Below, piece by piece: positions 225 through 50,269 of a DNA stretch of 64,000 bases. The notes under the pieces were generated by a model that had not been told where the DNA came from, ran no database searches, and saw only the letters and a list, made by a program, of their open reading frames with translations. The stretch covers positions 1 through 64,000 of IMG/VR virus record IMGVR_UViG_3300042359_000853, one strand, 5' to 3'. Both the position numbers and the translations under genes were made by a program. Within the stretch, counting starts at the first letter, position 1. Each line of letters begins with the position of its first letter.

Positions 225-322
225 AAATTTCTTAAAAAGATATAAAGGGATAAAATCTTTCCTAGGTAAAACAGGTGTTGATATAAAAATAATAACATTT
301 ATTTCCATATATACTCTATATG
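225..322 (+). repeat. Direct repeat copy A (upstream/promoter region of ORF 320)
   Basis: aaatttcttaaaaa-gat..aagggataaaatc..ggtgt..atatata..tatatg aligns with 1781..1880; aagggataaaatc is exact at 245..257 and 1802..1814. Confidence 0.75.
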
Positions 323-1699
323 AAATACTTGAAAACATACGAGAGTTTTAGAATCCTTAATGAGGAAATATTTGGTCTTTTCGGGTCTAATAATGGTCAG
401 AAGAGATATAAAAAATTAGAAGATAAAGATCTAATTAGTTTTATCCAAGACAACTCTAAGGAATTGGAGGGTAAATTTTCGGTCCCTTGGAAGACAAACT
501 TAATACAAAATATTTCTAATAAAGACGAAATTATAAAAATATTAAATGATATAAAAAATGAGAGTAGCTTAGATGGATTTATAAGTGACCTAGAGCTTAG
601 TAAAAACATCAAATTAAAATCAGTAGAAAAAGATCCATCACAGGAAAAAAAAGATGAACCTCAACCCTCTAAAGAAAAAGAAAATACTAATTTACAAGAT
701 ACAGAATTAAGAACTTTTTTAGAAAAATGGAAGGTAGAGTGGGAAAATATAATAGGGGAAGGAATTAATGAAAAATATATTAATGGGTTATATAATTTCT
801 TAAAATGGGAACCAGAGTTTCAAAATGGTTTACTTAAAGGTGAAAGTATGGGGCCGGATGAAACAGATAGATCAATAAATTTCTTAAAATTAATACAAAA
901 ATATAACCCACAATCATTAAAAGAAAAATTAGATATAATTAATAAAAAAAGGGAAGAACTTTTTAAAGAAATAAAAAAATATTTACCTAATTTTAATATC
1001 GATGATCCCAAAACTCACGAAAAATTTTTTAAAGCCAGCAATGATAAACCCTATATGAGATTAGAAGATTTTTTAGAAAATCTTAACCTTTTTACTAAAA
1101 ATGAATATTCCTCCCCAATAAATAAAAAATTAGAATTCATTTCAGAAAAATTAGAAAAATTTTCATTTGGCACGGATGTTAAAAAATTAGGGATTGATAT
1201 TTTAAGAGATAAAAAACTTATAGTTGATAGAAATGGTTTTGTTACCTATCACGGATCTGATAGGGATAACTATGGCGATGATAAATTTGCTTCTACAATT
1301 AACTTTAAAAAAAGAAAAGGATTAGGGTTATTTACATCAGATTTAAAAACAGCAATACAATATGCTATAGCTCAAACTAAAGGGGGGATGGCAGGATCTA
1401 AAGCTGAAGAAGGTGATAAAGTTACGATTTATCGTATTGTATTAAATAGTAAACCATTTCTATTGGGTAATGAAAATGAAGTCTCTTTCAGTGAGATGAA
1501 GGTATTATTAGATTTTGGTTTTGGTGGTTTAGATGGTATAGGTCAAACCGATAATGAAAGAGAAATTATTATAGTAACTCCTGATGCTATCGAAGGGGCC
1601 GAACTGATAAGTCAAGGTGATGACGAATTTGGTAAGATTCTCAAGATGGCCGAACAAAAAGGGGGAGGACATCGGGTTTCTGGGAAAAAAATGGACTAG
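320..1699 (+). CDS. Putative head-packaged protein with C-terminal ADP-ribosyltransferase-like domain
   Basis: N-terminus MKYLKTYESF..LNEE. C-terminal motifs VTYHGS, GLGLFTSDLKTAIQYA and NEREIIIVTP fit the H-Y-E pattern of ART folds. Confidence 0.5.
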   Translation: MKYLKTYESFRILNEEIFGLFGSNNGQKRYKKLEDKDLISFIQDNSKELEGKFSVPWKTNLIQNISNKDEIIKILNDIKNESSLDGFISDLELSKNIKLKSVEKDPSQEKKDEPQPSKEKENTNLQDTELRTFLEKWKVEWENIIGEGINEKYINGLYNFLKWEPEFQNGLLKGESMGPDETDRSINFLKLIQKYNPQSLKEKLDIINKKREELFKEIKKYLPNFNIDDPKTHEKFFKASNDKPYMRLEDFLENLNLFTKNEYSSPINKKLEFISEKLEKFSFGTDVKKLGIDILRDKKLIVDRNGFVTYHGSDRDNYGDDKFASTINFKKRKGLGLFTSDLKTAIQYAIAQTKGGMAGSKAEEGDKVTIYRIVLNSKPFLLGNENEVSFSEMKVLLDFGFGGLDGIGQTDNEREIIIVTPDAIEGAELISQGDDEFGKILKMAEQKGGGHRVSGKKMD

Positions 1700-1780
1700 T
1701 AGCGTAGGTAAAAAAATTTCCAAAAAGTTCTTACATGGAAGTCTTGGCCGGAAAATTTTCTAAAAAAAGGGGGTCAAAAA

Positions 1781-1880
1781 AAATTTCTTAAAAAAGATGC
1801 GAAGGGATAAAATCCTTTTTTGGGTAGGAAGTGGTGTAATGAAAAAATGATTTAATCTTTTTCAATATATATACTATATG
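1781..1880 (+). repeat. Direct repeat copy B (upstream/promoter region of ORF 1878)
   Basis: Same motif order and spacing to the ATG as 225..322. Confidence 0.75.
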
Positions 1881-2348
1881 AAAAAGATTAAATCATTTGT
1901 AGAGCACATCAAGGAAGATTTAGATGTATCTACTAGGCAAAGAGCTTTTCAAGAGCTCGAGAATAGAGTAAAAAGCTTAAAAAATTTCGAGCTCGATCGT
2001 AAGCTCCGGCAGCTTAGTAATATCTACCGTAGTCTTTCTGGCAGCTCAAATGCTCTTAAAGACGAGTTACAAAATTATATACGGGAAGTTTTAGGAGTTC
2101 CTAGAGCTGAAATACTCTCACGTAATCTTAGTATTAGAGGCGTAGGTAATCATACTGTTGAGTTTATTGTAAGGGATGGTGAAAGATCTATTCTATTACA
2201 CCTGATTGTAAAGCCTAACGGATATCGCGTAGGTGGTACATCTAGTAAAGATTTCTTAGATAGATGTGAGAATGATATACAATTTTGGGAGTTAGTAGAT
2301 AATCTAGCCCAGGGTATTCAGGAGAATGATATTTATTTGGAAAAATAA
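1878..2348 (+). CDS. Hypothetical protein with N-terminal MKKIKSFVEHIKE peptide
   Basis: 156 aa ORF; ATATATA box just upstream of the ATG. Confidence 0.75.
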   Translation: MKKIKSFVEHIKEDLDVSTRQRAFQELENRVKSLKNFELDRKLRQLSNIYRSLSGSSNALKDELQNYIREVLGVPRAEILSRNLSIRGVGNHTVEFIVRDGERSILLHLIVKPNGYRVGGTSSKDFLDRCENDIQFWELVDNLAQGIQENDIYLEK

Positions 2349-2431
2349 TTTCAAAAAAACCATATAAAACACTTAAAGACATTTAGGCAACTGGACAAAG
2401 AGACCTCTATTGAAGTAAATATTATCAGGTT

Positions 2432-2698
2432 TTATATGCCTAATATTTGATCGATTTTTTCATCTCTTACCTTTGAGAACTTCTTGAAGTTCTTCATTTC
2501 ACGGGTAATTACAAATAATGAAAGGGGAAATCTTCTACCGCTCTTGTTATATAACACTACCATACCAAATGCTATAGGATCATTTTGGTAGCCAGTATAT
2601 TCTTTGAATTGGACCAAATCACCCCTCTTCAATGGTCCGACCAGCATATCTCTTCCTTGGTAGATGAGAGTTTCACCGGGTATAAATTTATTTTCCAT
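2432..2698 (-). CDS. Small hypothetical protein, paralog array member 1 (C-term RDEKIDQIL)
   Basis: Shares GETLIYQG / LKRGDLVQF / RDxKIxxIL layout with neighbours. Confidence 0.75.
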   Translation of the reverse strand: MENKFIPGETLIYQGRDMLVGPLKRGDLVQFKEYTGYQNDPIAFGMVVLYNKSGRRFPLSLFVITREMKNFKKFSKVRDEKIDQILGI

Positions 2699-3510: not shown

Positions 3511-3876
3511 TCATAGTTCTTCCCTGTTTTGGTCGGTTTGGTTACCATCATCCCCTTCATCGGATAGAAGATCTCTTAGCTTACACTCTCTAATGGCTTG
3601 AGTTACTATTTCATCAGAAGCAAATTTAACGTCGTGACCACGGGAATCACAACTATAGACTAATTTACCATCACTAGAATAGTATTCTCTACTCCAAAAT
3701 CCATTAGAATCTCTGAGTAGGTAATTTCTTCCGAGATGATCCCAAAACCATCTAGTGCAAGTACCATCTTCTTCTTCTCTGTAAATAAGTTGGTGGTGCT
3801 CGTTTTGGATATCAAGATTACCATTCACCGAGAAATCCCAATCGAGTAGTTCAGATATTTTAGGCCACGGATTCAT
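3511..3876 (-). CDS. Hypothetical protein with short beta-hairpin-like repeats
   Basis: REEEDGTCTRWFWDHLG / RDSNGFWSREYYSSDG / SCDSRG periodicity; C-term RECKLRDLL. Confidence 0.6.
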   Translation of the reverse strand: MNPWPKISELLDWDFSVNGNLDIQNEHHQLIYREEEDGTCTRWFWDHLGRNYLLRDSNGFWSREYYSSDGKLVYSCDSRGHDVKFASDEIVTQAIRECKLRDLLSDEGDDGNQTDQNREEL

Positions 3877-4301
3877 TTTTGTGGAATTGTAATTATAGTG
3901 CCGCTTTTAAGGCCAAGCTCCCTAGCTAAGTGCCAACAAGAATCTGCCTGGGTCAGGTCACCTTGAACATGGTGGATACTTCCAAGCAGTAGCAAGGCCT
4001 CTGGTGTTGGATACCAAATAAGTGTTTGCTCGACAAGAGCTCTAGCTTCGGTGTATCTACGTTCATAAACCATTTTTTGAGCTCTTACTAAATTTTGAAT
4101 GATTAAATCTGTGGTGAAGTTAAATTTTTCATAAGTAAGTTGACGGGCCAGTGGAGGTATCGTATCCTTGGGTTTTTGTAGAGATGTTGAATCTTCACGT
4201 TTCTCGCGACCCCGCTCGGTATAGATACGAAATCTCGAACCTTGATAGCAAGAGACAAGTAGTAAAAATGAATAGAACAGAAGTGGTAAGAATTTTTTCA
4301 T
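3873..4301 (-). CDS. Putative lipoprotein with TPR-like helices
   Basis: MKKFLPLLFYSFLLLVSC signal and lipobox; YTEARALVEQTL..PEALLLLGSIHHVQGDLTQADSCW TPR pattern. Confidence 0.6.
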   Translation of the reverse strand: MKKFLPLLFYSFLLLVSCYQGSRFRIYTERGREKREDSTSLQKPKDTIPPLARQLTYEKFNFTTDLIIQNLVRAQKMVYERRYTEARALVEQTLIWYPTPEALLLLGSIHHVQGDLTQADSCWHLARELGLKSGTIITIPQK

Positions 4302-5739: not shown

Positions 5740-7314
5740 ATGAAACAAAAATTATTACTACTTCTCTTTCTACTAGTAAGTAGTCTGTCGGAAGCTCAAA
5801 ATCTAGTAGATACCGTAAGAACGAATATCACTACCAACACAACCTGGAGACGGGATAGAATTTATCTTATCGAAGGCTATCGGTTTGTAAAAGATGGAGC
5901 TACTCTAACAATCGAGCCAGGCACTACTATTAGAGGTGATAAAGCTTCGAAAGGCACACTTATTATTACAAAGACCGGAAAGATCCTAGCCAACGGAAAT
6001 GATACAATGCCTATTGTATTTACCTCGAATCAACCACAAGGAACTAGAACTTATGGTGACTGGGGAGGTATCGTAATCCTGGGAAACGCACCTATCAATG
6101 TTCCTGGTGGCATAGGTATTATCGAAGGTGGTCTTCTTGGGCAAGATGCTACTTATGGGGGAAATAACCAAGATGATAGTTCAGGAGTTTTTAGGTATGT
6201 TCGTATTGAATACCCAGGCATCGCCTATCAGCCAAACTCTGAAATAAACGGATTAACTCTCGGTGGTGTAGGTCGTAAAACACAAATCGATCACATACAA
6301 GTTAGCTATTCTGGTGATGATGCCTTTGAGTGGTTCGGTGGAAATGTAAATTGTAAATACCTAGTAGCACACAGAGGTTGGGATGACGATTTTGATACTG
6401 ATTTTGGATATTCTGGAAAGGTTCAATTCGCCTTATCAATGAGAGACCCAAATATTTCAGACCAATCCCAATCCAATGGACTTGAGTCTGATAACGATGG
6501 AACCGGAACTTTTAATACACCCTTTACTTCACCTCTATTTTCTAATGTAACTATTATTGGACCTAGAGAGGGTGGTAACCCGGCTTCACTCTACCGTAGA
6601 GCTATGCATCTTCGTAGAAATACCAGAACTTCTATCTATAACTCTCTTTTTACTGGTTATACAACTGGTCTTCATATTGATGGACAAGCATCTCAAGCAG
6701 CAGCTACTCTCGATAGCCTTCAGCTAGAACGTGTTATACTCTGTAATATGCTAAATAACTTCGAGCAAACATCTGGTCAAAATACCTGGCAAGGTATGAA
6801 CTCCTATTTTTTAGATTCAACTCGTCAGAACCAAATTATTGATAGCACATTTCGATTGGGTCTTCGCCCGGGTTACGCAAACTTGGGTAGTCCAGACCTC
6901 GTGCCAGATTCAGGAAGTTTATTGTTGAGTGGTGCTAATTTTACAAATCCCCGATTGAGTGATGGATTTTTTGATACCGTGAGTTTCATTGGCGCTTTTG
7001 GCCTAGTAGATTGGACTAGGGGCTGGTCAAATTTCAATCCAGATACCGTTCATACCTCTGTAGAAGTCGTAAATCGAACCGTAACAAGGGTTTATCCGAA
7101 CCCAGTTACACAAGGTCTATTTACTATTCAGTTAGATGAACTTCCACAAGATGTGCGTGTATTCGATATTCGTGGTAGGGAGGTTCAATCTTCATGGAGT
7201 CAGATCTCTGAAGATGCCATCCGAGTATCTCTGGATACAAATAAAGTTGGTCTAATGACCGTTCTTATTCAAGATAAACTTTCCTTAAAGATATCCAGAA
7301 TAGTAGTTCGGTAA
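5740..7314 (+). CDS. Secreted beta-helix-like protein with T9SS type A C-terminal sorting domain
   Basis: Signal peptide MKQKLLLLLFLLVSSLSEA. Core DDSSGVFRYVRIEYPG..EINGLTLGGVG..DDAFEWFGG resembles a Bacteroidota surface-protein family. C-term VYPNP..VRVFDIRGREV..KISRIVVR. Confidence 0.75.
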   Translation: MKQKLLLLLFLLVSSLSEAQNLVDTVRTNITTNTTWRRDRIYLIEGYRFVKDGATLTIEPGTTIRGDKASKGTLIITKTGKILANGNDTMPIVFTSNQPQGTRTYGDWGGIVILGNAPINVPGGIGIIEGGLLGQDATYGGNNQDDSSGVFRYVRIEYPGIAYQPNSEINGLTLGGVGRKTQIDHIQVSYSGDDAFEWFGGNVNCKYLVAHRGWDDDFDTDFGYSGKVQFALSMRDPNISDQSQSNGLESDNDGTGTFNTPFTSPLFSNVTIIGPREGGNPASLYRRAMHLRRNTRTSIYNSLFTGYTTGLHIDGQASQAAATLDSLQLERVILCNMLNNFEQTSGQNTWQGMNSYFLDSTRQNQIIDSTFRLGLRPGYANLGSPDLVPDSGSLLLSGANFTNPRLSDGFFDTVSFIGAFGLVDWTRGWSNFNPDTVHTSVEVVNRTVTRVYPNPVTQGLFTIQLDELPQDVRVFDIRGREVQSSWSQISEDAIRVSLDTNKVGLMTVLIQDKLSLKISRIVVR

Positions 7315-7613: not shown

Positions 7614-8147
7614 ATGCTACTTCGCTCTATTTTTCTTCTGATTTTACTACTTCTTTCTGCCAGAGGCCATTCTCAAATCTATCTTAATGGTGATACAATA
7701 AACGATCAAACTTGTAGAAGAGTTGGTCTTATTCAACTTGATTGGACAGAGACTATCGATACGTCATCTTCGAATGTTATACTCTATTATACGGTTCATA
7801 TTGATAAAATAATCGATGAGAAAAAACAAGAAGAGTTGGATAAGTTTTTAGATAAAAATTTAGTAGGGGGCAGAGGTGATACCCTTGTTTATTATTTTTA
7901 TTACTATAGATATGATCTAGAAACACTTTCATCACTTCTATCTCATTATAGTTTAAAAACTTCACTAGAGGTTAGAAAAATGATGTTTGTAAAAATTGGC
8001 GCTTGGGGTCTGGGCGCTGGAGTTGCCTTTATAAATCCCGTAGCAGGACTTTTAGTTATCTCAGCTGGAGAGATTTGGAGTTTGAAATGTCTAAGGAATA
8101 TTTCTAGAGATAGTATCGAGATGAGTGTCGATGTTCAAGGAAAATGA
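7614..8147 (+). CDS. Exported/membrane hypothetical protein
   Basis: Likely start MLLRSIFLLILLLLSARGHS (signal peptide) at 7614; C-terminal glycine-rich hydrophobic hairpin. Confidence 0.65.
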   Translation: MLLRSIFLLILLLLSARGHSQIYLNGDTINDQTCRRVGLIQLDWTETIDTSSSNVILYYTVHIDKIIDEKKQEELDKFLDKNLVGGRGDTLVYYFYYYRYDLETLSSLLSHYSLKTSLEVRKMMFVKIGAWGLGAGVAFINPVAGLLVISAGEIWSLKCLRNISRDSIEMSVDVQGK

Positions 8148-12050: not shown

Positions 12051-13928
12051 ATGAAAAAAGACGTAATCATCGGTATTGACCTAGGAACAACTAACTCAGC
12101 GGTAGCTATTGTTGAGGCGGGAGATTCAGTGATCATTCCAAACTCTGAAGGCCGCAGAACAACACCATCGGTCGTTGCCTTCACCGATAAAGACCGAAGA
12201 ATCGGAGATCCTGCTAAAAGACAAGCAGTGACCAATCCCCAAAAAACCATCTACTCTATTAAGAGATTTATTGGTAAGAGCTGGGCAGCATCGAAAGACG
12301 AAGCTGGCAAAGTTCCCTACACGGTGAAATCAAGCTCAAACTCTACACCCGTCGTATCGATTGATGATAGAGATTATACCCCTCAAGAAATCTCAGCGAT
12401 GATCCTTCAGAAAATGAAAAAAACCGCCGAAGATTATCTAGGTTACGAAGTTACACGAGCTGTTATTACCGTTCCTGCTTACTTCGGAGATGCCGAAAGA
12501 GGCGCAACGATGGAAGCCGGTCAAATCGCTGGGCTTAAAGTCGAGAGGATTATCAACGAACCTACAGCAGCTGCCCTGGCCTATGGTTTAGATAAAAAAG
12601 GTCAAGACTCAAAAATCTTGGTTTTCGACTGCGGAGGTGGAACCCACGACGTATCAGTTCTTGAAATTGGTGATGGTGTATTCGAGGTAAAATCAACCGA
12701 TGGTGATACCCATCTAGGTGGTGATGACTTTGATAATGCGATCATTGCCTGGATGACCGGTGAGTTCAAAAGTGACACTGGTATCGATCTAACGAAAGAT
12801 CCAATGGCATTACAACGACTGAAAGACGCAGCTGAAAAAGCAAAGATCGAACTTTCTTCTTCACTTTCAACCGAGGTCAATCTTCCCTATATTACGGTGA
12901 AGGATAACGTTCCTCAACACTTTGTGAAATCTCTTACCCGTGCTAAGTTCGATCAACTTACCAAATCACTCGTTGATAGAGCAGTGGCCTGTGCGAAAAG
13001 TGCTCTAAAATCTGCTGGTCTTAAGCCAAGTGAGATTGATGAAGTAGTTTTAGTAGGTGGTTCTACTCGCATTCCAGCTATTCAAGATGCTGTCGAGAGT
13101 TTTATTGGTAAAAAAGCCAATAAATCTGTAAATCCAGATGAAGTCGTAGCAATGGGAGCAGCTATTCAAGGTGCTGTTCTTACCGGTGATGTTAATGATG
13201 TTCTTCTACTAGACGTTATTCCACTCTCGTTCGGTATTGAAACCATGGGTGGTGTAATGACCAAACTTATCGAGGCCAACACAACTATTCCAGTAAGAAA
13301 GCAGCAAACTTTCTCAACAGCTGCTGATAATCAAAACTCAGTTGAAATCCACGTTCTTCAAGGTGAAAGGCCGATGGCATCAGATAACCGTTCGATAGGC
13401 AGGTTCCATCTTGATGGTATTATGCCAGCTCCGAGGGGTGTTCCACAAATCGAGGTTAGTATTGATATCGACGCTAATGGTATCCTAAGTGTTAAAGCTC
13501 AAGATAAAGCTACTGGTAAAGAAAACAAAATTCGTATCGAAGGTGGTTCTTCTCTAACACCAGAGGAAATCCAACGTATGAAAGACGAGGCTATTCAGAA
13601 CGAGGCTGAGGATAAACGTAAGATGGAAACTGCCGAGCTTGTCAATAAGTGTGATACTCAAGTATTCACTACTAAAAAATCACTCGAAGAGTGGAAGGAC
13701 AAGTTTACACCCGAGCAGCTAGAAGAGCTTCAAAAACTGGTCGGCCAGCTCGAAGAGGCTCTCTCTCAACGAGACGAGACTAGGATGAAAGAAGCTTCGT
13801 CTTCTCTTGAGTCGACTTTCTCCAAAATTTCTACCGAGATTTATTCTAAAATCAGTAGTGAAGAAGGTTCTAGTTCAAGTGGTGTAGAAGATGTAGAATA
13901 TACAACGGTTGAAGATCAAGACAAGTAA
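12051..13928 (+). CDS. dnaK: Chaperone DnaK (Hsp70)
   Basis: [61 protein letters not shown]. Confidence 0.98.
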
Positions 13929-16218: not shown

Positions 16219-16321
16219 ATTTGTATATATAAAATCTATACTATGGAACTTCACTCAAAACTTCATCTTATTAAGTTCCTAAGAAAAGTGAAAAGTTTCT
16301 TAAAAACTAAATAGAGTTCAA

Positions 16322-17611: not shown

Positions 17612-17690
17612 ATTTGTATATATATTATTTGAGGAATGTTTTTTTATATATAAACTTTATCAAAAAAAAAATAATCAAAAGAGAAAGAGA

Positions 17691-17903
17691 ATGTTTTCAA
17701 TAGAAGATCTAAATATTTGTATTATTTCTCATAACATATTTATTAAAGACATAAATCTCGGACATAACTTCGATCAAATACACCGGATATCTGTAAAAAG
17801 GGGCAAACCTTCGAAGGAAATCCTAGATGAAATTTGGAAAAAAAAGTTAGCTAAATCAGTTCAACTAAAAAGGGATAGAAGGTTGAAAAAAATACTGAAT
17901 TAA
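17691..17903 (+). CDS. Small basic hypothetical protein (C-term KRDRRLKKILN)
   Basis: Start refined to MFSIED to avoid overlap with 17611(-). Confidence 0.55.
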   Translation: MFSIEDLNICIISHNIFIKDINLGHNFDQIHRISVKRGKPSKEILDEIWKKKLAKSVQLKRDRRLKKILN

Positions 17904-18969: not shown

Positions 18970-19000
18970 ATAAAATTTTATTTAAGGGTATATATTATTT

Positions 19001-27173: not shown

Positions 27174-27175
27174 AT

Positions 27176-27189: not shown

Positions 27190-27193
27190 GGGT

Positions 27194-31589: not shown

Positions 31590-31597
31590 AAAGGAAA

Positions 31598-34500
31598 TTA
31601 TTTATTCGGAATCTGAACAGTATCTCGTAAATCTTTGGATTTTCCGCTAAAAACTACTCTGTTTTGATATACAACTTCCCACGACAATAGAGAACCATCT
31701 ACTATATTCCAGGACCAAGAGGATTCATAATTTGCTAATTCTTGTTCTAAAATTTCTTCTCGACCATCATCATATACTAATATAAATTTTATTCCAATAT
31801 TATTGTTCGTAAGATTTCTAGAGAAGAACATAAAGTTATCTGAATTTTCAACTCTGTAAACACCCGTGAAGAAATCCTTGAAATTATTAGAAAAATTAGA
31901 GATAGAGGCCTCTGTATTCCAAATAGTATCTGTTAAAATACTATCCATAATTCTACCATTATGTATTTTCAATTCTTTCGGGTTTGTTTTTTCAAGAAGT
32001 CTTCTAAATAACACTTCTACAGTTACAAAATCTCTACTATGCCACTTTTTTTGTATAAAATCTAAGTAATCACTCTCTTTACTAAATTTTGGTATTGTAT
32101 CTAAAAAATAATCAATATTCCAGAACTGAAGATGAAAAGATATGTTATTTTCTTCAGTTTCTGTGGATTCATCGTAGTCGTTAAAAAATAACACCGCTTT
32201 TTGGTCATTACTCTCCATTTCAAGTGCGATATCATAGATTTTATCTAGTGAACGATTACCATATAGATCGTCACATTCAATTCTCACCACATTTGTGTAT
32301 CCGAGTGATTTTGCTAAGCTCATTGCGTTATGAAAATTTACCATTACAGATAAACCGTGTTTTTGAACACCTTTTGTAAAATTTTTCAGAGTGAAAATCC
32401 ATTTACTTTCAAGAGAGACATAATCATTTATAATTATTTCTTTAACATTTGAATATTCTTCACGAAATAATTGATTTCTACGATCATAGTAAAAAAAATC
32501 AACCATTTGTTGTATTTCTCTATCAATTGTTGTATTAGATACTAACATCAAATCAAATCCTCTAATTTTGAACCTTTCGATCTGCTGAATTAGTCTTTCT
32601 TTCACTCTTCTACTTGATACATAACTATCTAAAATTACTAGAGTTTTTTCTAGACCTTTTATTTGGATATCAGTTTTTGTTAATTCTTTATCCCCATGAA
32701 TATTTTTTGATATGAAAACCACACCTTTTTCCTGTGAAGTGCCGTTTATCAGAGTTTTACAATCTTCTTCAAAAATTTGATACTGGTATCCAAGCTTAAT
32801 GATTCTCAAAATTATTTGATTTCTAAGTATATCTTCAAAGTTATCGTGGAACTCTAATATAATATTCTCTATCTTGAGTAAATTCTGATCAGAAAGACCC
32901 TCGAAGGCTTTATATTCACTACCTTCGATGTCCATTTTCATGAGAGAGACTTTCTCAATACCAGAATCAGCAAAAAAGCTATCTAAGTCTATTGATGAAA
33001 TTTCGAAATGTTTATCGGTGATATTGATGGCAGAGCTAATAATTGAATTGTTTTGATCTTCATAGATTTTTATCTTTTCTTTTTTATCCCAAACAGCGTT
33101 TTTTACAAGACTAACTCGTGAATCCTCACCGTGTAAATTATTAAATACCTTGACTGCTTTATCAGAAACCTCAAAAGCTATTACTTTTTTTGCTCCTTTA
33201 TCTTTTGCTAATTCCGTGAATAGTCCAATAGAACTACCAACATCTAAAATCAGATCAAGTGAGTTTATACTAGAAAGAAATTGATCATAAATTCTATCTG
33301 TAAAAAATTGTTCGAAATTTACAAAAATAGGTTCATAAGTATCGATTCTAAACTTTTTTTTCTGAACATTAATCATCTTTATCTGATATGATTGAGAATA
33401 TAGTAAATTTCCACCATGATCGTAGAAATCAATAAGAAATCCTGAGAAATTTGGATTTTCTGAAAAATCATAATAGGATTTTGGTAGTGGTATTGCCCAA
33501 TAATTATTTTTATTTTCGAATTTTGCATCAAATGAAAAAATAGGAATTTGAGTATCCATATCTCTAATACAAACCATCATATCGAAAGGAAGGTCATGTA
33601 AATAATTTAGAGTCAATTTATTATCTGAACTATCAAAGTCAATATCAAATAATTTTTGGTTGAAAAATTCTGGTTTGATTAGTGTGTAGTTGTTTAATAA
33701 GTCTAGCATAGAGTATAATATTTTTGAATTTTCTTCTAAATCTTGGACCATCCATTTCAATTTCGAAGATTCTGTGTAGGTGTTCATATAGACGGGTATA
33801 TTTCTGAGAAAAAGTGGTATTTCCCAAGCGATGGCTTCTTTTATAGCAAGTGGGTTCGTTTCAGTATCACCATATCTACCTTCTGATGGGAAAATTACGG
33901 CATCCATACAAGAGTAAAAAGTATGAACATCGCTTCTTTCCCTCCAAATTTGACAATTTGGTGGTTTATTATCAATCAAATCTTGCCAATGACCCCTATA
34001 ATTATCAGGAAGAGCTCCAACAAAATGAAACTGAACATCAGGCATTATTTTTGCTAGGGAGAAGGTAAATCGTTGATTTTTTCTATTAGAGAAAAGTCCT
34101 ACTTGAAGAACATGCCTTTTTGTAGGATCGAGTCCTAATGTTTTCATACCTAATTCCCTATTTCTCTCACCGGTCGTAATTTCATGCTCGATAATTTCGA
34201 TGGGAATCCCAAGAGGTAGGAAATTTTTGACTTGCCACAGACTCACAACAAGCATCTTATCTGGTAGATACTTTTTCTCACGATGATCGATCGACGAGTC
34301 ATGAAGTGTTTCAAATATTTTCCAAGTTCTTGATGGTGAATATATTTTATCTAGTAATGGATGTGGCAGAAAATGGTCTGAAGTTTCTTCGAAATGAACC
34401 ACATCAGGTGAAATTTTCTGTAATAAGGTAAAAAGTTTTTTATAATTTTGATCGAGTGAAACCAATCTCGAACCAATCATCCCCTCTATTTTTTCTCGAA

Positions 34501-34636
34501 TCGTCGTATATTGTTTTTCATATACTAATTCGAAAACCCATACTTCGTTGTCTGTGTGTAATAGTTCTACTTTTTTTCTTAAATACTCTGGCATTCCACC
34601 AGTAGAAAGATGTGGTGTAATATAAACTATTTTCAT
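31598..34636 (-). CDS. Multidomain GT4 glycosyltransferase + FkbM methyltransferase + C-terminal domain
   Basis: HLSTGGMPEY, ETNPLAIKEA (GT4); LDVGSSIG..AFEV..LMKMDIEGSE (FkbM); start at MKIVY. Confidence 0.8.
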   Translation of the reverse strand: MKIVYITPHLSTGGMPEYLRKKVELLHTDNEVWVFELVYEKQYTTIREKIEGMIGSRLVSLDQNYKKLFTLLQKISPDVVHFEETSDHFLPHPLLDKIYSPSRTWKIFETLHDSSIDHREKKYLPDKMLVVSLWQVKNFLPLGIPIEIIEHEITTGERNRELGMKTLGLDPTKRHVLQVGLFSNRKNQRFTFSLAKIMPDVQFHFVGALPDNYRGHWQDLIDNKPPNCQIWRERSDVHTFYSCMDAVIFPSEGRYGDTETNPLAIKEAIAWEIPLFLRNIPVYMNTYTESSKLKWMVQDLEENSKILYSMLDLLNNYTLIKPEFFNQKLFDIDFDSSDNKLTLNYLHDLPFDMMVCIRDMDTQIPIFSFDAKFENKNNYWAIPLPKSYYDFSENPNFSGFLIDFYDHGGNLLYSQSYQIKMINVQKKKFRIDTYEPIFVNFEQFFTDRIYDQFLSSINSLDLILDVGSSIGLFTELAKDKGAKKVIAFEVSDKAVKVFNNLHGEDSRVSLVKNAVWDKKEKIKIYEDQNNSIISSAINITDKHFEISSIDLDSFFADSGIEKVSLMKMDIEGSEYKAFEGLSDQNLLKIENIILEFHDNFEDILRNQIILRIIKLGYQYQIFEEDCKTLINGTSQEKGVVFISKNIHGDKELTKTDIQIKGLEKTLVILDSYVSSRRVKERLIQQIERFKIRGFDLMLVSNTTIDREIQQMVDFFYYDRRNQLFREEYSNVKEIIINDYVSLESKWIFTLKNFTKGVQKHGLSVMVNFHNAMSLAKSLGYTNVVRIECDDLYGNRSLDKIYDIALEMESNDQKAVLFFNDYDESTETEENNISFHLQFWNIDYFLDTIPKFSKESDYLDFIQKKWHSRDFVTVEVLFRRLLEKTNPKELKIHNGRIMDSILTDTIWNTEASISNFSNNFKDFFTGVYRVENSDNFMFFSRNLTNNNIGIKFILVYDDGREEILEQELANYESSWSWNIVDGSLLSWEVVYQNRVVFSGKSKDLRDTVQIPNK

Positions 34637-34703
34637 GTTATTTTTATATCCCATATCCTGTAATAGTTTTTGTAAACAAATAACAAATTAAATATATACT
34701 ATA

Positions 34704-37140: not shown

Positions 37141-39084
<1,944 letters not shown>

Positions 39085-39085
<1 letters not shown>

Positions 39086-40562: not shown

Positions 40563-41585
40563 ATGTCTAAAGATTACTATGGAATACTAGGTGTTGATAG
40601 AGGAGCATCGAGTGAAGAAATAAAAAAAGCATACCGTAAAAAAGCACTCGAGCACCATCCAGACAAAGGAGGAGATGAAAATAAGTTCAAAGAGGCCTCT
40701 GAAGCCTATGAAGTTCTCTCTGATAGTGATAAAAGAAGTAGATACGATAGGTTTGGAACCGCAGAACCAGGTCATGGTGGGGGTTTTAATCCAAATGATT
40801 TCTTCTCTGGTTTTGGTGATATATTTGGTGATATGTTCGGAAGAAGACCCGGCGCACAAAGAAGAGGTCAAGATATCCGTGTTCAAATTCAACTTAATAT
40901 TTTAGACATTTTGACAGGTGTAAGAAAAAAAATCCGATACAATCGAAACGCCAAGTGTGAACCGTGTCAAGGTCAAGGTGGTCAAAATTTTCAGGCTTGT
41001 TCTTTCTGTGGAGGAAGTGGTCAAAAAATAACTATCGCGAATACCCCGTTTGGGAGAGTTCAACAATCAGTTACTTGCCCGACATGCAGTGGGAGAGGCC
41101 AACAAATAAAAGATAAATGTCGAAGTTGCTCCGGATCAGGAGTAAAATCAGTCGAAGAGGTTGTAGAAGTTGATATTCCACCAGGAGCAGTGGGTGGTAT
41201 GCAAATGGCAGTTCCCGGTAAAGGACACGCAGTTCAAGCTGGAGTAGAAGGAGATCTTCATGTTTTAATCCAAGAGTTAGAGCATGAAACCTATAAAAGA
41301 GACGGACATAATATCAATATTGATTATTGGTTAGATATTCACCAAGCAGTTTTGGGTTCTCGAATTCAAGTGGAAACCCCACAAAAAAATATAGAACTTT
41401 ACATTCCATCAGGAACCGAATGGGGTAAAGTATTTACCTATCAATCTCTCGGGGTTCCCGTGATTGACGGTCACGGACATCAGAGAGGCCGAGGGGATCT
41501 TAAGATTATTATTAAAATAAAAATACCAAAAATTTTATCAGGGGAGCAGCGAGAAATATTTGAGAAATTGAAAGAAGTTTCTTAA
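40563..41585 (+). CDS. dnaJ: Chaperone DnaJ (class A)
   Basis: J-domain with HPD, G/F region, four CxxCxGxG motifs, C-terminal GDL domains. Confidence 0.97.
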
Positions 41586-42929: not shown

Positions 42930-43080
42930 GTTAGTTTTTTTTGGATATATATTAAAAATTTAACTACTTAAATATGAACTACACAGAAGTCCTTATTTTC
43001 TTTTTTCAATTTGACAAAAAAGAATCCAAAAAGTTGAAAAATGAAAAAAAAAATTTAATATATAAAAAAAAATATAAATA

Positions 43081-43641
43081 ATGAAACACTTAAAAAAATT
43101 TAATAATCTAATCAAAGAAGATTTAGCTAAATTCAATCCTAACATTGAGGAAACTTACGAAGGTTTTTTTTCTAAATGTATGGAATTAAATACTATCATT
43201 CAACAACACGGAGGAGTAATTAATAGATATTTTGAATTAATAGAAAAGATCCAAGATTGGGATAGTATGTATTCTCCGAACATTTCTATTTCAGAGGTCA
43301 ATAACCCTAGCATGGGCCATGTCTACATGGGAAAAATGCGGATTCCGGTATACTTTGCAAAAAGTTTAGGAGGAAATCGTAAGGTGAAAGATGTTAATGT
43401 AATAACTTTCGTAGTATGCAAGTATAAAGACTATCCTGGCCCAGAATACAAAAATGAAAGAAGAAAATTAGGAGTACAAAAAGCACTAGAACAACTAAAA
43501 AAGGTATATCCTGATAGATTTCCTGATAGTTTACCAGGACGCATTTCAGTAGGTGGTGTAACTGTTGAGGATCCAGTAGAGACACTTGCTAATTTAGTAG
43601 AAAAAATAAAAGTTTTTCAAGAAAACCTAGGCAACCTGTAA
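43081..43641 (+). CDS. Hypothetical protein with N-terminal MKHLKKFNNLIKE peptide
   Basis: 186 aa; ATATATA and TATAAATA upstream. Confidence 0.75.
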   Translation: MKHLKKFNNLIKEDLAKFNPNIEETYEGFFSKCMELNTIIQQHGGVINRYFELIEKIQDWDSMYSPNISISEVNNPSMGHVYMGKMRIPVYFAKSLGGNRKVKDVNVITFVVCKYKDYPGPEYKNERRKLGVQKALEQLKKVYPDRFPDSLPGRISVGGVTVEDPVETLANLVEKIKVFQENLGNL

Positions 43642-43746: not shown

Positions 43747-44859
43747 TTAAATATAGATAGTATAGAATGATTCTCCTGACATGTGGTTAAATGTAAAAAA
43801 AAGTGACAAACTATAAATGGTCTTCTCAGCCTCTTGTGCATCTAAATTTTTATGCAAAACATATAAATTGATAGAAAAATTAGAATGTTGAGATTTTATT
43901 TTAGTAATAAGATTTGGTAATTCTGTTAGGATATCCTGACTGATATTAATTACTATATCGTTATAAGTTAAATTTGTGTCGTAATCAAAAAATAAATTAT
44001 GAAACCAAAAAAGTTCTTTCAATAACATTCTTTTATATGGTGTCAATTCACTAGATATAAAAAGAATATTATTTCTACTCTTCGACAGATTGGATCCACA
44101 AAGATAAAAACACCTTGTTAAATCATAAATTGGAAAATAATTGGGAAGTAATGAACATTTATTTGGATTTTTTAGATCTGGAAATTTATTTTCGATTCTT
44201 AGTCTTTCTTCTTCATTTTTAACCAATTGTTCATTTGTTATTGTTTGTTTGGACCAACTATCTTGGCTTATGTAATAATCACCAAGTGTTAGTGGTAGAA
44301 GAAACCACTTACCCACGAACTCAATATGTCTAACTACATTAGTATCAATGTAGAAACTATCCATTGAACCATCATCGAATTCAGGTAATATATTTCTAAA
44401 AGCCCTGAAGTCAGGTCTTGTATCGAATGTTGGTGAACTAGAGCAATTACAATTTATATAAAGATATGGGTAAGGTGATAAAAATGTGTTTTCATTGTTT
44501 AATTCTCTTGTGTAACATGAAATCCCAGTCACTTGGGGGTATTTTCCAAAAAAATGCGCGTAAGTTTCCAATAATGATGGATATGCATAATCATCACTAT
44601 CAAAAGTCACACATATGTCACCACTACTACCTCTTTGTGGATTATAAAGACACTCTTTTTTCCTAGATTGTCTGAAGTATTTTACTCTAGGATCTTTTAT
44701 TGATAATTCTATCAATTTATCCTCTGCACTATCAAATTCTGAAAAATCATCAGTCACTATCCATTCCCAATTTTTGTAAGTTTGATCTAATATTTGCTCA
44801 TATATTTTTTCAACTCTATGACCACGGTTATAGAATTGTGTATTAATAGAAAACTTCAT
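43747..44859 (-). CDS. GT2-family glycosyltransferase
   Basis: FSINTQFYN..NWEWIVTDDFS..FDSDD. Confidence 0.8.
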   Translation of the reverse strand: MKFSINTQFYNRGHRVEKIYEQILDQTYKNWEWIVTDDFSEFDSAEDKLIELSIKDPRVKYFRQSRKKECLYNPQRGSSGDICVTFDSDDYAYPSLLETYAHFFGKYPQVTGISCYTRELNNENTFLSPYPYLYINCNCSSSPTFDTRPDFRAFRNILPEFDDGSMDSFYIDTNVVRHIEFVGKWFLLPLTLGDYYISQDSWSKQTITNEQLVKNEEERLRIENKFPDLKNPNKCSLLPNYFPIYDLTRCFYLCGSNLSKSRNNILFISSELTPYKRMLLKELFWFHNLFFDYDTNLTYNDIVINISQDILTELPNLITKIKSQHSNFSINLYVLHKNLDAQEAEKTIYSLSLFFTFNHMSGESFYTIYI

Positions 44860-46622
44860 AATATTATTTTATGTTTTTTTTTAAAGTAAGTTTTTACAAA
44901 CTTCATTTGTCCAAGATCCCATATTCTAAGAGCTCCAAACTCCCCGAAAACTATCTGATGTTCAGATAAATCTCTATTGTATCCCATTTTTACTAATTTT
45001 TGTTTGGTAAATTTTTGTTTATTTTGTCTTCTACCATCAAGTAGGTAACTAAAATTTGGACCGGTTATAGAATCCAAATTGAATCCCAGTCTGTAATATA
45101 GTGTTCCTAGTGACCATGATCTATCACTAAAAGATACCAAAAGTTTAGGACTATATTCTCTCTCGAAATGGGTAAGTAGTTTAGATGCTGCTCCTGGTAT
45201 GGTTGTATCTAAAATATTACAAAACCTAGAAAGATTCCATTCATCATCTTTCATCCTTTTTCTGCCAGAAAAATGATCAAAAGTCATTAAGCTAACTAGT
45301 TGATCCCCGTAATAAAGACCAAGTCTTAAACTAGAAGATGTGTATCCTTGAATGTGATTTTTATCTAAAAAATCTCTGTATTCACTTACAGAATCTACTT
45401 TTTTTACCCTACATTTTCTAGCACTTATGCGAGTAGTAGAAACTCGAATCCAGTTTTTGATTTGACTTTTGATGATATCTTTTTTTAGTGACCAATCATC
45501 TTCCCAAATCTGGATTATTCTGATTCTCTTTTTAGAAAAAAACTCAAGTTTATCTAAATGATAAGATTTATTTTTGTAAATCTCTGAGTGCCAGTAAAGA
45601 CCGTTATATTCGAATCCAATAGATAGTGAAGGAAGATACATATCAATTTCAAGACCATCACGGTAGTTTAAGATAACTTCGCCACTATAAATAGATTTTA
45701 TGTAGTTGAAAATTTCTATTTGACTAGTAGATGAAATATTATTTAAGGGGTTACAAATAAGACATTTTGGTGAATTTATTCTCGTTCTAGCGCCATACAG
45801 ATGTGTATGTATTTGGTAGTTGTGATCTTTACCAAGATCACATTTTAAGAAGTATGTTCTATTTCCTAGATATTCAATAAAATTTGGATCCTGACCAATA
45901 GTTGAATTTATTTCTCCCTTTCGCCATTTTTCTAAAATACCATCTTTGTATTTTTGTGATTGAGTGTAGTTTTCAACACCCCAATTTCTTTTAGTAGTTT
46001 CTATGGCTTTTCTATTCAACACTTCGGATTTTCTTGGACTATCTACTCCGAATTTCTGGATAAGTGTCTCTTTAATCTTTTTCTTTACCTCTTCAGATCT
46101 AAATGGATTATCAACACCTAAGTTTTTTTGTAAAGTTTCTACTTTTTTTTTCTTGACCTCGTCTATTTGTGATACGTTTTCAACTCCGTATTTATCTAGA
46201 AGAGTTTCTCTAATTTTCTTAGAGATTTGATCTTTATCTAAAGATCTTAAAGAATCCATCAATTTTAGACGAACATCTGGATGCAACGAAGGATTTTTAT
46301 ATCCCCATTTTTCTAAACTATTTCGTCTAAAAATTTCTAACTTTTGGTCTATTAAATCTTTGTTTCCATTCGAGCAAAGTTTCGAGCAGAAATCCCGGTA
46401 TCCTCTTTTTAGAGATAAGAATTCAGTTCTACTATCACAGGTTTTACAAAAACCTCTTGGTCTTTTCAACAAATAAATCTTTTCTGAAAGTGTATCACCT
46501 TCAACTTTTTCGAGATATTCATATAAAGATGGATAATTTTTCTTGACCCAAGAAGATTTTACACTACCAAGTAATAGTTTGTTTTCTATAGTCTCTAGAT
46601 CTTTTTCGATATTATTTTCCAT
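44856..46622 (-). CDS. Free-standing homing-endonuclease-like protein with Zn fingers, repeats, nuclease and GNAT-like C-terminus
   Basis: CKTC..FCSKLC; five (Y/W/L/F)GVxN-type repeats; EIDMYLP..FEYNGLYWH..IWEDDW; FLDKNHIQG..LSRFC..GAASKLL. Confidence 0.7.
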   Translation of the reverse strand: MENNIEKDLETIENKLLLGSVKSSWVKKNYPSLYEYLEKVEGDTLSEKIYLLKRPRGFCKTCDSRTEFLSLKRGYRDFCSKLCSNGNKDLIDQKLEIFRRNSLEKWGYKNPSLHPDVRLKLMDSLRSLDKDQISKKIRETLLDKYGVENVSQIDEVKKKKVETLQKNLGVDNPFRSEEVKKKIKETLIQKFGVDSPRKSEVLNRKAIETTKRNWGVENYTQSQKYKDGILEKWRKGEINSTIGQDPNFIEYLGNRTYFLKCDLGKDHNYQIHTHLYGARTRINSPKCLICNPLNNISSTSQIEIFNYIKSIYSGEVILNYRDGLEIDMYLPSLSIGFEYNGLYWHSEIYKNKSYHLDKLEFFSKKRIRIIQIWEDDWSLKKDIIKSQIKNWIRVSTTRISARKCRVKKVDSVSEYRDFLDKNHIQGYTSSSLRLGLYYGDQLVSLMTFDHFSGRKRMKDDEWNLSRFCNILDTTIPGAASKLLTHFEREYSPKLLVSFSDRSWSLGTLYYRLGFNLDSITGPNFSYLLDGRRQNKQKFTKQKLVKMGYNRDLSEHQIVFGEFGALRIWDLGQMKFVKTYFKKKHKIIL

Positions 46623-47708: not shown

Positions 47709-47712
47709 AAAG

Positions 47713-48620: not shown

Positions 48621-48623
48621 ATT

Positions 48624-49256
48624 TCAAGAAACTTTTCTACGATTGGATTCGTAAATAGGATTGAAACTTTGTCCTCTGAAAAAAGCAGTTGAATAACGAC
48701 TGACTAAACAATTCGGGAAAAATTCAATAAGTTTATCAATATCAGGTATCGAACATTGAACCCTTCTCTGGTCTTTCGAATCAACTTTAGGATTGATTAT
48801 AATACCCATATCTTTTGTTTTTTGTAGATTTTTTTTCATGGATTTGTAGAGATCCGAAGTTGATTTTGAACATCTACCTTTAGGGATAGATTTAATCAAC
48901 TCTACGTATTGGATTAGTTCTTCTCTGGTGAGACTTCCGAAAAAATAATCTCTTAGTTGAGGGGTGAAATTGATTTCAATAACTTCTTCTACTCTTTTGT
49001 ATCCAGAGAATTGTTTGTATCTTACTATAACGAGTGTTTGTTTTTTATTAGTATCCAAATCCCAGATACGAAGAATATCACCCATACCGACGGATTTACC
49101 ACCAGTCGTTTTAACTGAGATATCTTCTTGAACAAGGGAAATATCATGCTTTGAGGTGTCATTACCAGAGGGTCCTAATCCAAAAATAGAACGAATCTGA
49201 TCCTCCCAGAAGTAACCGTGACCCTGACTTTGAGTATATACCGAGTTTGAAACCAT
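48624..49256 (-). CDS. Putative PD-(D/E)xK nuclease (restriction-endonuclease-like)
   Basis: HGYFWEDQI..KHDI..ISVKTTG; converges on the MTase with a 3-nt gap. Confidence 0.5.
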   Translation of the reverse strand: MVSNSVYTQSQGHGYFWEDQIRSIFGLGPSGNDTSKHDISLVQEDISVKTTGGKSVGMGDILRIWDLDTNKKQTLVIVRYKQFSGYKRVEEVIEINFTPQLRDYFFGSLTREELIQYVELIKSIPKGRCSKSTSDLYKSMKKNLQKTKDMGIIINPKVDSKDQRRVQCSIPDIDKLIEFFPNCLVSRYSTAFFRGQSFNPIYESNRRKVS

Positions 49257-49388
49257 ACAGTAAAGATAAGGAAAAAAATTCAATTTTCAACCATTCATTC
49301 CAAATTAATTATCCACTTTTTGTGGGTGTAATTACCAACTCATGGTTAGAAGGCTACAAATAATCTTTTCAATATAATATATAGAATT

Positions 49389-50000
49389 ATGAGATATATA
49401 CGAAATTATAAATTATTTGAGAATAGTAGTTCACTAACACAAGATCAAATAGATTTTTTAACAAGAAGCGCCAGTGGTCCTTGGTCAGTAGATCCAGAAA
49501 CAGGATTTATTGATGTTACGGGAGGTTTTAATTGTGATGATCAGAATCTTGACAATTTTTTGGGACTTAAATTCGGTAAGATTGGTGGACATTTCACTTG
49601 TAAAGGGAATAATCTTAGAACACTCGAGGGTTCTCCAGAAATAGTGTATTTGAGTTTTTGGTGTGAAGAAAATCCTTTAGTGTCTTTCGAAGGTGCCCCC
49701 AAAAGAATAGACGGTAATTTCATATTTGGAAATTATCACGATGTATATAACTTAAGTGGATTTTTAAGGTGGATCAAAAGAGAAAAACCAGGAGATGCCG
49801 AACTAATTCTAACCCATCACTTTTTCACACCAGAGGTTATTAAAAAACAAATAGACAAAGATTCCAACTTCTGCTATTATGTAAGTAAAGCCTGGAATAC
49901 ACCACCCTTTAAGAAAAAACAAGAAAAACTAGGGGAGATTTTACCCGAGAATATACTTCTCAAGATAGACGATCTATGGTCTATCGGTGGATATTTATAA
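49389..50000 (+). CDS. LRR-like repeat protein with N-terminal MRYIRNYKLFE peptide
   Basis: GGHFTCKGNNLRTLEGSPEIVYLSFWCEENPLVSFEGAP repeats. Confidence 0.7.
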   Translation: MRYIRNYKLFENSSSLTQDQIDFLTRSASGPWSVDPETGFIDVTGGFNCDDQNLDNFLGLKFGKIGGHFTCKGNNLRTLEGSPEIVYLSFWCEENPLVSFEGAPKRIDGNFIFGNYHDVYNLSGFLRWIKREKPGDAELILTHHFFTPEVIKKQIDKDSNFCYYVSKAWNTPPFKKKQEKLGEILPENILLKIDDLWSIGGYL

Positions 50001-50011
50001 TATATAAGATA

Positions 50012-50269
50012 ATGAAACATATAAAACTTTTCGAGTCTCTACCACAACAATCAACAGTTGATCAACTAAAAAAACTTAGAAAAATTATGAATGGAACCGA
50101 TGTGGGTGATAAAATATCAGATATGAACAAAGAAGGATCAAACATCATGTGGATTAGAAACCCAGTGGATACTGGTATTGAAAGCTATCAAGACTACCAG
50201 AAGAAAAGTAAAAAATTTAATCAAAACTGGAATTTAAAGCATATCAAACCTTTTTCTAGCGAAGATTAA
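50012..50269 (+). CDS. Small protein with N-terminal MKHIKLFES peptide
   Basis: Start refined; ATATATA 5 nt upstream. Confidence 0.7.
   Translation: MKHIKLFESLPQQSTVDQLKKLRKIMNGTDVGDKISDMNKEGSNIMWIRNPVDTGIESYQDYQKKSKKFNQNWNLKHIKPFSSED

Follow-up and report, generated by a model that had tools for sequence, protein, structure and literature searches.

What is the role of a short N-terminal peptide shared by phage proteins whose bodies are unrelated? The question is raised by the first 64 kb (64,000 nucleotides, below called the window) of a 227,583-bp virus record of IMG/VR, IMGVR_UViG_3300042359_000853 (below, the 227.6-kb fragment; linear, 33% G+C, CheckV completeness 39%). An earlier note on the window listed ten open reading frames (ORFs) that begin with a similar leader and lie behind an ATATATA box, and proposed that the leader is a portable address loading diverse effectors into the phage head. 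The analysis described here suggests, with a probability of about 0.6, that the leader is the counterpart, in this megaphage lineage, of the capsid-targeting sequence (CTS) of phage T4. The tag probably marks dozens of unrelated proteins for loading into the head and injection together with the DNA.

The major capsid protein (MCP) of the fragment is 69% identical to that of the uncultured phage LR745206 (634,780 bp), 66% identical to that of LR756502 (642 kb), and 54-55% identical to those of LR756504 and LR756501/3 (636-735 kb). Identity to the MCPs of Lak phages and of Tenacibaculum phage PTm1 is about 30%. Genomes above 634 kb belong to the Mahaphage clade, whose predicted hosts are Bacteroidetes (Al-Shayeb et al., PMC7162821). 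Promoters of the Bacteroidota type, TAnnTTTG, stand ahead of many genes of the fragment, and DNA of the phage is present in at least 20 lake-water metagenome runs. Because of these similarities, the clade placement, the promoters and the lake-water runs, the window is taken to be a piece of a freshwater Mahaphage-clade megaphage of roughly 600 kb that infects Bacteroidota. A megablast search of the phage collection with 8 kb of the window gave no match.

The leader occurs in two forms. Type A has the pattern ..KK[FYW]xx[FY][IL]xE, and type B has the pattern MK[YH][LI]Kx[FY]..E. A logo anchored on the aromatic residue reads M-K-[YH]-[LI]-K-x-[FYW]-[ENK]-[EQS]-F-[IL]-x-E, and conservation is lost about seven residues past this anchor. 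A regular expression derived from the T4 CTS, and hence independent of these data, matches four N-termini in the 227.6-kb fragment (0.53 expected, p 0.002) and 17 of the 947 N-termini in LR745206 (2.0 expected, p 7e-11), the consensus of the latter being MIKKYxQFIKE[SE]. A position weight matrix (PWM) was built from those 17 N-termini only, and the expectation was taken from internal windows. In the 227.6-kb fragment 12 N-termini score at least 6 bits, with 1.7 expected, and eight score at least 8 bits, with 0.4 expected. In LR745206 the PWM finds 63 N-termini, compared to 4.8 in internal windows. The motif scan of the genome and its relatives proposed by the earlier note thus places the leader well above chance, and the same comparison shows that the leader is a short peptide at the extreme N-terminus and not an internal motif.

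Type-B starts are found in 64 proteins of LR745206 and six of the 227.6-kb fragment. On the DNA level, the type-B pattern has 69 occurrences in LR745206 (base composition predicts 0.6), 84 in LR756502, 34 in LR756504 and 15 in LR756500, and reversed-pattern controls for the last three give 0-3 occurrences. T4, PTm1 and Lak-C1 contain 0-1 occurrences. The 735-kb genome LR756501 has type A in place of type B. In total, about 16 of the 245 genes of the 227.6-kb fragment and at least 114 of the 947 genes of LR745206 (12%) carry a leader. The motif noticed in the window is therefore real, and the earlier figure of about ten was too low. These counts are themselves lower bounds, as starts may be miscalled: the longest-ORF start of the gene at 216632-217303 (+) of the 227.6-kb fragment is probably wrong, since an internal start MMIKTFEK would give a leader and the LR745206 orthologue starts with MKYIRTYESY. 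A hydrophobic-x-Glu site falls within the first 14 residues of 111 of 126 leaders, with about 25% estimated by chance from the internal rate. The glutamate is mostly residue 9, 11 or 12, and the residue following it is most commonly serine, then Glu, Phe, Asn and Ala.

Selection on the leader acts at the level of the peptide and not of the DNA or RNA. Indeed, the use of synonymous codons in leaders equals that in gene bodies (AAA 0.68 and 0.74, GAA 0.72 and 0.72, TTT 0.80 and 0.70, respectively), and the third codon positions of the type-B DNA matches vary freely. A repeated DNA cassette consisting of the box and the leader was also considered and is ruled out, as the codons vary freely and the box and the leader are also found apart.

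The likeness to the T4 CTS is specific. When all 265 T4 ORFs (NC_000866) are scored with the PWM trained on the megaphage, the internal proteins IPII and IPIII (MKTYQEFIAE) rank second and third with 14.6-14.7 bits, and four T4 N-termini reach 8 bits (0 expected). MKTYQEFIAE is the experimentally defined CTS of T4 (PMC8442874). Suppressor mapping in T4 assigned residues 4 and 7 to targeting and residues 8 and 10 to processing (PMC9026906). The leader positions [FYW] at 0, F at +3, I/L at +4 and E at +6 are equivalent to Y4, F7, I8 and E10 of IPIII. Type-B leaders are one or two residues shorter and retain both the aromatic residue and the hydrophobic-x-Glu site.

The genes expected of such a system are present outside the window, at 183-192 kb of the 227.6-kb fragment. 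They encode a gp20-type portal (PF07230, 5e-50), a gp23-type MCP (PF07068, 2e-27) and a 709-aa head maturation protease-scaffold (189772-191901, minus strand; phrog_207, 2.6e-29). The protease matches T4 gp21 in BLASTP at 6e-4. His74 (GEFDHP) and Ser129/130 (VSSR) are invariant with H85 and S140 of T4 gp21, which we take to be its catalytic residues, in an alignment of nine sequences (GE.xHP, [VI]SSR). The N-terminal LIVE of the protease, followed by N, aligns with LLIE of T4, followed by T. The MCP N-terminus ALKKWSPVLEN, which is kept in LR745206, aligns with LLNKWKPLLEG of T4 gp23, and a second site, INE before N, aligns with IFE before N. A PDB sequence search with the protease gave no match.

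The C-terminal two thirds of the protease (about 450 aa) look like a fused scaffold; the PTm1 homologue is annotated as "prohead core scaffolding protein and protease". This part contains 10-11 tandem 14-residue repeats NISYSEY[LI]AENLDx with the core YSEY[LI]AEN. Their shape, aromatic-x-x-aromatic-[LI]-A-Glu, is that of the leader. There are 10-13 copies in all five close relatives, whereas LR756500 has two and the array is missing from Lak-C1 and PTm1, so that its distribution roughly parallels the abundance of leaders.

The bodies behind the leaders are diverse. After removal of the first 25 residues, 130 leader proteins form 119 BLAST clusters, and 114 leader proteins subjected to iterative profile searches still form 101 clusters; the largest family has 23 members, of which 14 carry a leader. 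Among 127 leader proteins, matches to no more than 22 Pfam families are found. Behind high-confidence leaders, complete domains begin at residue 30-40 in a 2H phosphoesterase (weak Acb1-like match) combined with an RNase_T exonuclease, in a DHH phosphoesterase with a winged helix-turn-helix domain, and in a nucleotidyltransferase of the poly(A) polymerase/CCA-adding type. A T4 RNA ligase 1 domain, likewise behind a high-confidence leader, starts at residue 77. Other matches in the leader set are NUDIX, SMODS-associated NUDIX, GH108, peptidase M15 and the DUF2201 metallopeptidase. The candidate cargo consists mostly of ORFans, to which enzymes of nucleotide signalling and RNA repair and peptidoglycan hydrolases are added. 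For comparison, 114 proteins of matched length that lack the leader have 68 families, including thymidylate synthase, ribonucleotide reductase, ClpP, RNase H, HU, aminoacyl-tRNA synthetases, RF-1 and DnaB. Replication and metabolic enzymes of this kind are absent from the leader set, apart from one tRNA-synthetase match on a protein whose leader was probably called in error.

Seven of the 16 leader genes of the 227.6-kb fragment have no homologue in LR745206. In orthologous pairs the leader is usually found on both proteins despite differences in the leader sequence. The ratio of observed [LI]xE sites to shuffle expectation is 1.03 in leader bodies and 1.14 in other proteins, which is a weak hint that cleavage sites may be avoided in the bodies. 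A separate observation concerns the 23-member family of LR745206 (37041, 596245, 625004, 625486 etc.). Its members are small and acidic, often lie in tandem arrays, and have a second motif, I.DI.D.F.EL.D.G[FY], just after the leader.

The box noticed in the window is a different matter. There are 208 TATATA sites in the 227.6-kb fragment, and 64% of them fall within the 6.4% of non-coding sequence. The extended consensus is tTT(a/t)ATATATA. The box occurs within 30 nt upstream of 84 of the 245 genes, including those for the MCP, the protease-scaffold, the tail sheath and endolysin; at the portal gene the nearest box is somewhat further upstream. Hence it appears to be a general promoter of this phage, probably a late one, and not part of a leader-specific unit as had been supposed: many leader genes of LR745206 have no box of their own. 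On the other hand, leader genes are enriched in it. TATATA is found upstream of 14 of 16 leader genes and 70 of 229 other genes in the 227.6-kb fragment, and of 54 of 114 and 205 of 833 genes, respectively, in LR745206. The distance to the ATG is at most 8 nt in 10 of the 16 and 33 of the 114 leader genes. The host-type promoter TAnnTTTG is rarer at leader genes of LR745206 (5 of 114) than at other genes (104 of 833, p 0.008). The enrichment of one signal and the depletion of the other fit a co-expression of leader proteins with virion proteins. The late promoter consensus of T4, TATAAATA, which is read by gp55, is not matched by the box. No homologue of gp55 was found in the 227.6-kb fragment or LR745206 by a single-sequence search with T4 gp55, which does not prove its absence.

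The spacing between the box and the ATG is bimodal, with a class of 4-8 nt and a class of 13-30 nt, the latter with A-rich 5' leaders. Similarly, in LR745206 the box lies 4 nt before 62 genes and 5 nt before 31 genes. With the box in the role of a -10-like element, the short-spacing class, about half of the box-proximal genes, would imply that leaderless or near-leaderless mRNAs may be widespread in these phages. The box ends 4-7 nt before the ATG in about 35 genes of the 227.6-kb fragment (e.g. window 1868-1877, 16219-16229 and 49378-49388) and about 110 genes of LR745206. Several divergent gene pairs are separated by 19-30 nt around a single TATATA(TA), at 299-319 and 27174-27193 of the window and at 185916-185934 and 158815-158844 of the 227.6-kb fragment. 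Since the box is palindromic and could serve two divergent genes at once, this arrangement suggests that both genes are transcribed from one box and have hardly any 5' leader. Seven metatranscriptome runs contain 5-11% of the sequence words of one gene, and the contigs from four of them cover only 16764-17719, too few for mapping of 5' ends. One of these contigs crosses the predicted start; taken together, they are uninformative on the transcription start and even on transcription itself.

Taken together, these observations allow us to propose the following mechanism. Many unrelated proteins would be synthesised with an amphipathic leader of 9-16 residues, M-K-[YH]-[LI]-K-x-[FYW]-x-x-[FY]-[IL]-x-E or, in a shorter form, MKYLKx[FY](N/E)E, their genes sharing the TATATA promoter with those of the virion. 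The leader would dock the cargo onto the core of the assembling prohead, this core probably being the scaffold part of the protease-scaffold with its leader-like repeats. The gp21-like serine protease would then cut after the glutamate of hydrophobic-x-Glu, and the mature cargo would stay in the head and enter the host with the DNA. The idea of a portable tag agrees with the match to the T4 CTS, the presence of gp21-like protease, portal and MCP, about 100 unrelated bodies, selection at the protein level, and the box shared with virion genes. The other half of the earlier proposal, that the cargo consists of diverse effectors, is for most of these proteins conjecture, as they are ORFans.

The capacity of the head is not an obstacle. 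We estimate that 100 protein species of about 20 kDa in ten copies each would amount to about 20-25 MDa. T4 packs roughly 1000 molecules of internal proteins (PMC8442874), and more than 40 MDa is reported for SPN3US (PMC7411985), so that the estimate is in the T4 range and below SPN3US. A bolder version of the proposal is that a subclade of Bacteroidota-infecting megaphages loads and injects about 100 leader-tagged proteins, approximately 12% of its genes, and that the leader, often together with a leaderless-mRNA promoter 4-5 nt upstream, forms a plug-and-play cassette. We consider this version tentative and somewhat doubtful.

Several points weigh against the assignment of the leader as a CTS. 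Packaging and cleavage are inferred entirely from sequences, as are docking, injection and the late timing of the promoter. A CTS on 12% of genes far exceeds anything seen in a characterised phage. About 12% of leaders lack a hydrophobic-x-Glu site within 14 residues, and half of the leader genes of LR745206 have no box of their own (none within 30 nt in 60 of 114). The leader bodies are acidic (median pI 4.9), whereas the internal proteins of T4 are basic. The protease scores 17-19 bits with Peptidase_S77 (PF03420), below the curated cut-off of 27. Lak-C1 and PTm1 have no type-B leaders and only a faint enrichment of type A, and therefore the system as defined here is confined to closer relatives. 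The top match of the PWM in T4 is neither IPII nor IPIII, but gp61.1 (54 aa, MKTFKEFIKED; NC_000866 18966-19130, minus strand). To our knowledge, gp61.1 is not among the described head proteins of T4. Either a CTS protein has been overlooked here, or the motif is not sufficient; in any case, its presence alone does not prove packaging. Prediction of a complex between the protease domain and a 40-aa leader gave no answer and counts neither way.

One possibility is that the leader is read by another machine, such as the phage's own Hsp70/DnaJ chaperones, a Clp-type protease for which it would be a degron, or some intracellular compartment or condensate, and that the similarity to T4 is convergent, both peptides being amphipathic basic-aromatic helices. 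Indeed, the window encodes a full-length Hsp70 and a type-I DnaJ, LR745206 encodes ClpP, the first half of the leader, KYLKKF, presumably resembles generic chaperone-binding segments, and a signal on 12% of genes is easier to accept if it directs sorting in the cytoplasm. We nevertheless consider this unlikely, as it leaves unexplained the glutamate at a fixed spacing, the match to the mapped residues of the T4 CTS, the enrichment behind the promoter of virion genes, and the occurrence of the motif in the propeptide region of the MCP and, in 10-13 copies, in the protease-scaffold.

Common descent could also produce a shared N-terminus if the leader proteins were fast-diverging paralogues from a few families and the helix had no targeting role. 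Many type-B genes are small acidic ORFans arranged in tandem (as in a run of nine at 11-16 kb of LR756502), and in the 23-member family similarity continues into a second motif just after the leader. However, 101 clusters remain among 114 proteins after iterative profile searches, the known folds are different (2H phosphoesterase, DHH, RNA ligase 1, nucleotidyltransferase, NUDIX, GH108, M15 peptidase), and conservation collapses soon after the aromatic anchor, which makes this explanation quite improbable. Finally, the first codons could be constrained by the box lying 4-7 nt from the ATG, so that the motif would be a nucleic-acid or translation-initiation signal and the peptide a by-product. 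The leader codons are A/T-rich, and the short distances given above (10 of 16 and 33 of 114 leader genes) are as such a model would have them; but it is contradicted by synonymous codon use equal to that of gene bodies and by free third positions, 60 of 114 leader genes lack a box within 30 nt, and about 90 box-proximal genes lack a leader. We regard a signal of this kind as highly improbable. Each of these explanations accounts for less of the evidence than a T4-type CTS does.

All ten ORFs listed in the earlier note are present with the N-termini quoted there, and TATATA is found upstream of each of them, with gaps of 4-19 nt to the ATG. Eight of the leaders fit type A or type B, one is weak and one degenerate. 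The proteins are mutually unrelated by BLAST, and Pfam and PHROG searches gave no match for any of the ten, including the body described as resembling leucine-rich repeats, for which Pfam is empty. The starts 16218, 27173 and 50012 lie inside longer ORFs of the mechanical list, and the position of the box favours these internal ATGs.

The first gene, 320-1699 (plus strand, 459 aa), lies 6 nt behind TATATA 308-313. Its type-B leader, MKYLKTYESFRILNE followed by E (320-364), is retained in two orthologues (P0002 and P0003). The body had been called ADP-ribosyltransferase (ART)-like. There are leads to ART-PolyVal, RES and DUF3990 in the C-terminal 170 aa, all of them weak and below the reliable range; the window protein has no Pfam match, and one homologue matches PF18760 at E 0.028, which is also weak. 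A whole-library HMMER search with this domain yielded only five representatives, and an AlphaFold2 model from six sequences had pLDDT 42 and was unusable. An ART-like domain is possible. The second gene, 1878-2348 (plus strand, 156 aa), is separated by 4 nt from TATATA 1868-1873 and has the type-A leader MKKIKSFVEHIKE followed by D (PWM 14.1 bits).

Three genes are on the minus strand. The ORF 16218-14836 (460 aa; TATATA 16224-16229, gap 5 nt) has only a weak variant of the leader, MILDELQYEKYLLE followed by N, and its LR745206 orthologue has a canonical leader starting with MKYIKPYSNFSINE. The HExxH motif attributed to this protein is there, as HELAH, and its metallopeptidase look-alikes are weak. 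The ORF 17611-16322 (429 aa; TATATA 17617-17622, gap 5 nt) has the type-A leader MIHKKFNQFLNE followed by E, the top match in the 227.6-kb fragment with 21.5 bits, and eight paralogues in LR745206. The ORF 18969-18427 (180 aa; TATATA 18989-18994, gap 19 nt) has the type-A leader MRVRYFDEFILE followed by R, and its LR745206 orthologue begins with MKIRKYIEFITE.

A divergent pair shares the palindromic box TATATATA (27179-27186). The ORF 27173-25368 (minus strand, 601 aa, gap 5 nt) starts with MNLLNTYE, a degenerate leader without hydrophobic-x-Glu and the weakest of the ten. The protein is rich in Asn, Ser and Thr and of low complexity, with four tandem units TNDLTG[ST]RL near residue 130 and no family match. 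The ORF 27194-27487 (plus strand, 97 aa; TATATA 27181-27186, gap 7 nt) has the type-A leader MNYRSKIKNFTQFVKE followed by A (20.5 bits), and its orthologue begins with MIKKFYQFINE. The remaining three genes are on the plus strand. They are 43081-43641 (186 aa; TATATA 43059-43064, gap 16 nt), with the type-A leader MKHLKKFNNLIKE followed by D (13.9 bits); 49389-50000 (203 aa; TATATA 49378-49383, gap 5 nt), with the type-B leader MRYIRNYKLFE followed by N; and 50012-50269 (85 aa; TATATA 50001-50006, gap 5 nt), with the type-B leader MKHIKLFE followed by S. For the body of the last one, the match is to the C-terminal portion of a longer leader-like protein from LR745206.

Other genes deserve a brief description. 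Full-length Hsp70 (PF00012, 1e-242) and complete type-I DnaJ (J domain, CXXCXGXG, C-terminal domain) are encoded at 12051-13928 (+) and 40563-41585 (+) of the window, respectively, and a second J-domain-like N-terminus is found at 102443-103168 of the 227.6-kb fragment. A homologue of adenylosuccinate synthetase is encoded at 37757-39085 (+) of the window (PF00709, 3e-152; PHROG 1211, named after a PurZ-like enzyme) and may be either PurA or an enzyme of the PurZ type, which serves 2-aminoadenine DNA. Genes resembling those of glycosyltransferases, methyltransferases and sugar-modifying enzymes form long runs at 28348-34654 (-) and 56159-64000 of the window; they include genes for proteins of 1018 and 772 aa and may serve modification of surface or DNA glycans. 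Classical signal-peptide or lipoprotein N-termini, clearly distinct from the charged leader, occur at 3873-4301 (-), 5740-7314 (+) and 7614-8147 (+) of the window and at 200546-206200 of the 227.6-kb fragment, some of them behind TAnnTTTG. Large genes of homing endonucleases of the HNH/DUF7487 type (phrog_3339, to about 1e-118) are located at 44856-46622 (-) of the window and at 186430-187947 and 191980-193686 of the 227.6-kb fragment, the latter two flanking the MCP-protease pair.

All knowledge of huge phages comes from metagenomes, and their genes are for the most part ORFans. Should the system be T4-like, a motif of ten residues would assign about a tenth of the genes to one functional class, that of proteins which travel in the head and enter the cell at infection, and the tag would point directly to candidate counter-defence effectors. 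The logic of the CTS and gp21 would then hold for the largest phages known and for hosts from Bacteroidota, suggesting an ancient address system in the gp23-type lineage, and the leaders would offer portable packaging tags for engineering. The promoter architecture, in turn, would imply widespread leaderless translation in these phages. Were the bolder version true as well, no other virion known would carry a cargo nearly as diverse. A newly acquired enzyme, be it a phosphodiesterase of the type acting against the cyclic-oligonucleotide-based anti-phage signalling system (anti-CBASS-like), an RNA-repair enzyme, an ART or a peptidase, would become a pre-made injected effector, and with the tag the proteins that uncultured huge phages inject could be listed from sequence alone.

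The principle itself is textbook T4 biology, and in T-even phages CTS-like leaders have been described on proteins that vary (PMC9026906, PMC3012670). We found no description in the literature of such a system in huge Bacteroidota phages or at about 6-12% of genes, nor of two leader subtypes, leader-like repeats in a protease-scaffold, or a frequent join to a leaderless-type promoter. The phages phiKZ, 201phi2-1 and SPN3US are also large and have numerous proteins inside the head; their diverged gp21-like proteases remove propeptides of head and ejection proteins by cutting after Glu, at more than one motif, and undergo autoprocessing at the C-terminus (PMC5694885, PMC9026906). However, these phages belong to a different clade, their propeptides are mostly 100-160 residues long with no shared short tag, and the motif is [S/A/G]-x-E. 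Polyvalent proteins, MuF-linked effectors and the Dar system of P1 are other means of bringing anti-defence enzymes into the head, with the similar logic that diverse enzymes (ART, metallopeptidase, nuclease) are delivered with the DNA, and two window proteins have weak ART-PolyVal and LPD leads. There, however, delivery relies on fusion in one giant protein or on adaptor proteins, and not on a short cleavable N-terminal address.

A counterpart of the gene 320-1699 is T4 Alt, an ADP-ribosyltransferase that is packaged, processed by gp21 and injected. The window protein would similarly combine a leader with a possible ART body, an enzyme delivered ready-made. The two have no sequence similarity, the ART assignment is a lead only, and the Alt leader MELITELFDE does not score with the PWM. 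The T4 CTS as a whole differs from the megaphage leader in that T4 has a handful of tagged genes, and the megaphages have dozens to more than 100 per genome, in two leader subtypes and scattered rather than gathered in one locus. The host is from Bacteroidota, the cargo is mostly acidic and not basic, and the megaphage is known from its genes alone. On the other hand, both systems have a tag of about ten N-terminal residues, K-x-aromatic-x-x-F-I-x-E with Glu at P1, which is placed on unrelated, fast-turning-over proteins and is accompanied by homologues of gp20, gp21 and gp23.

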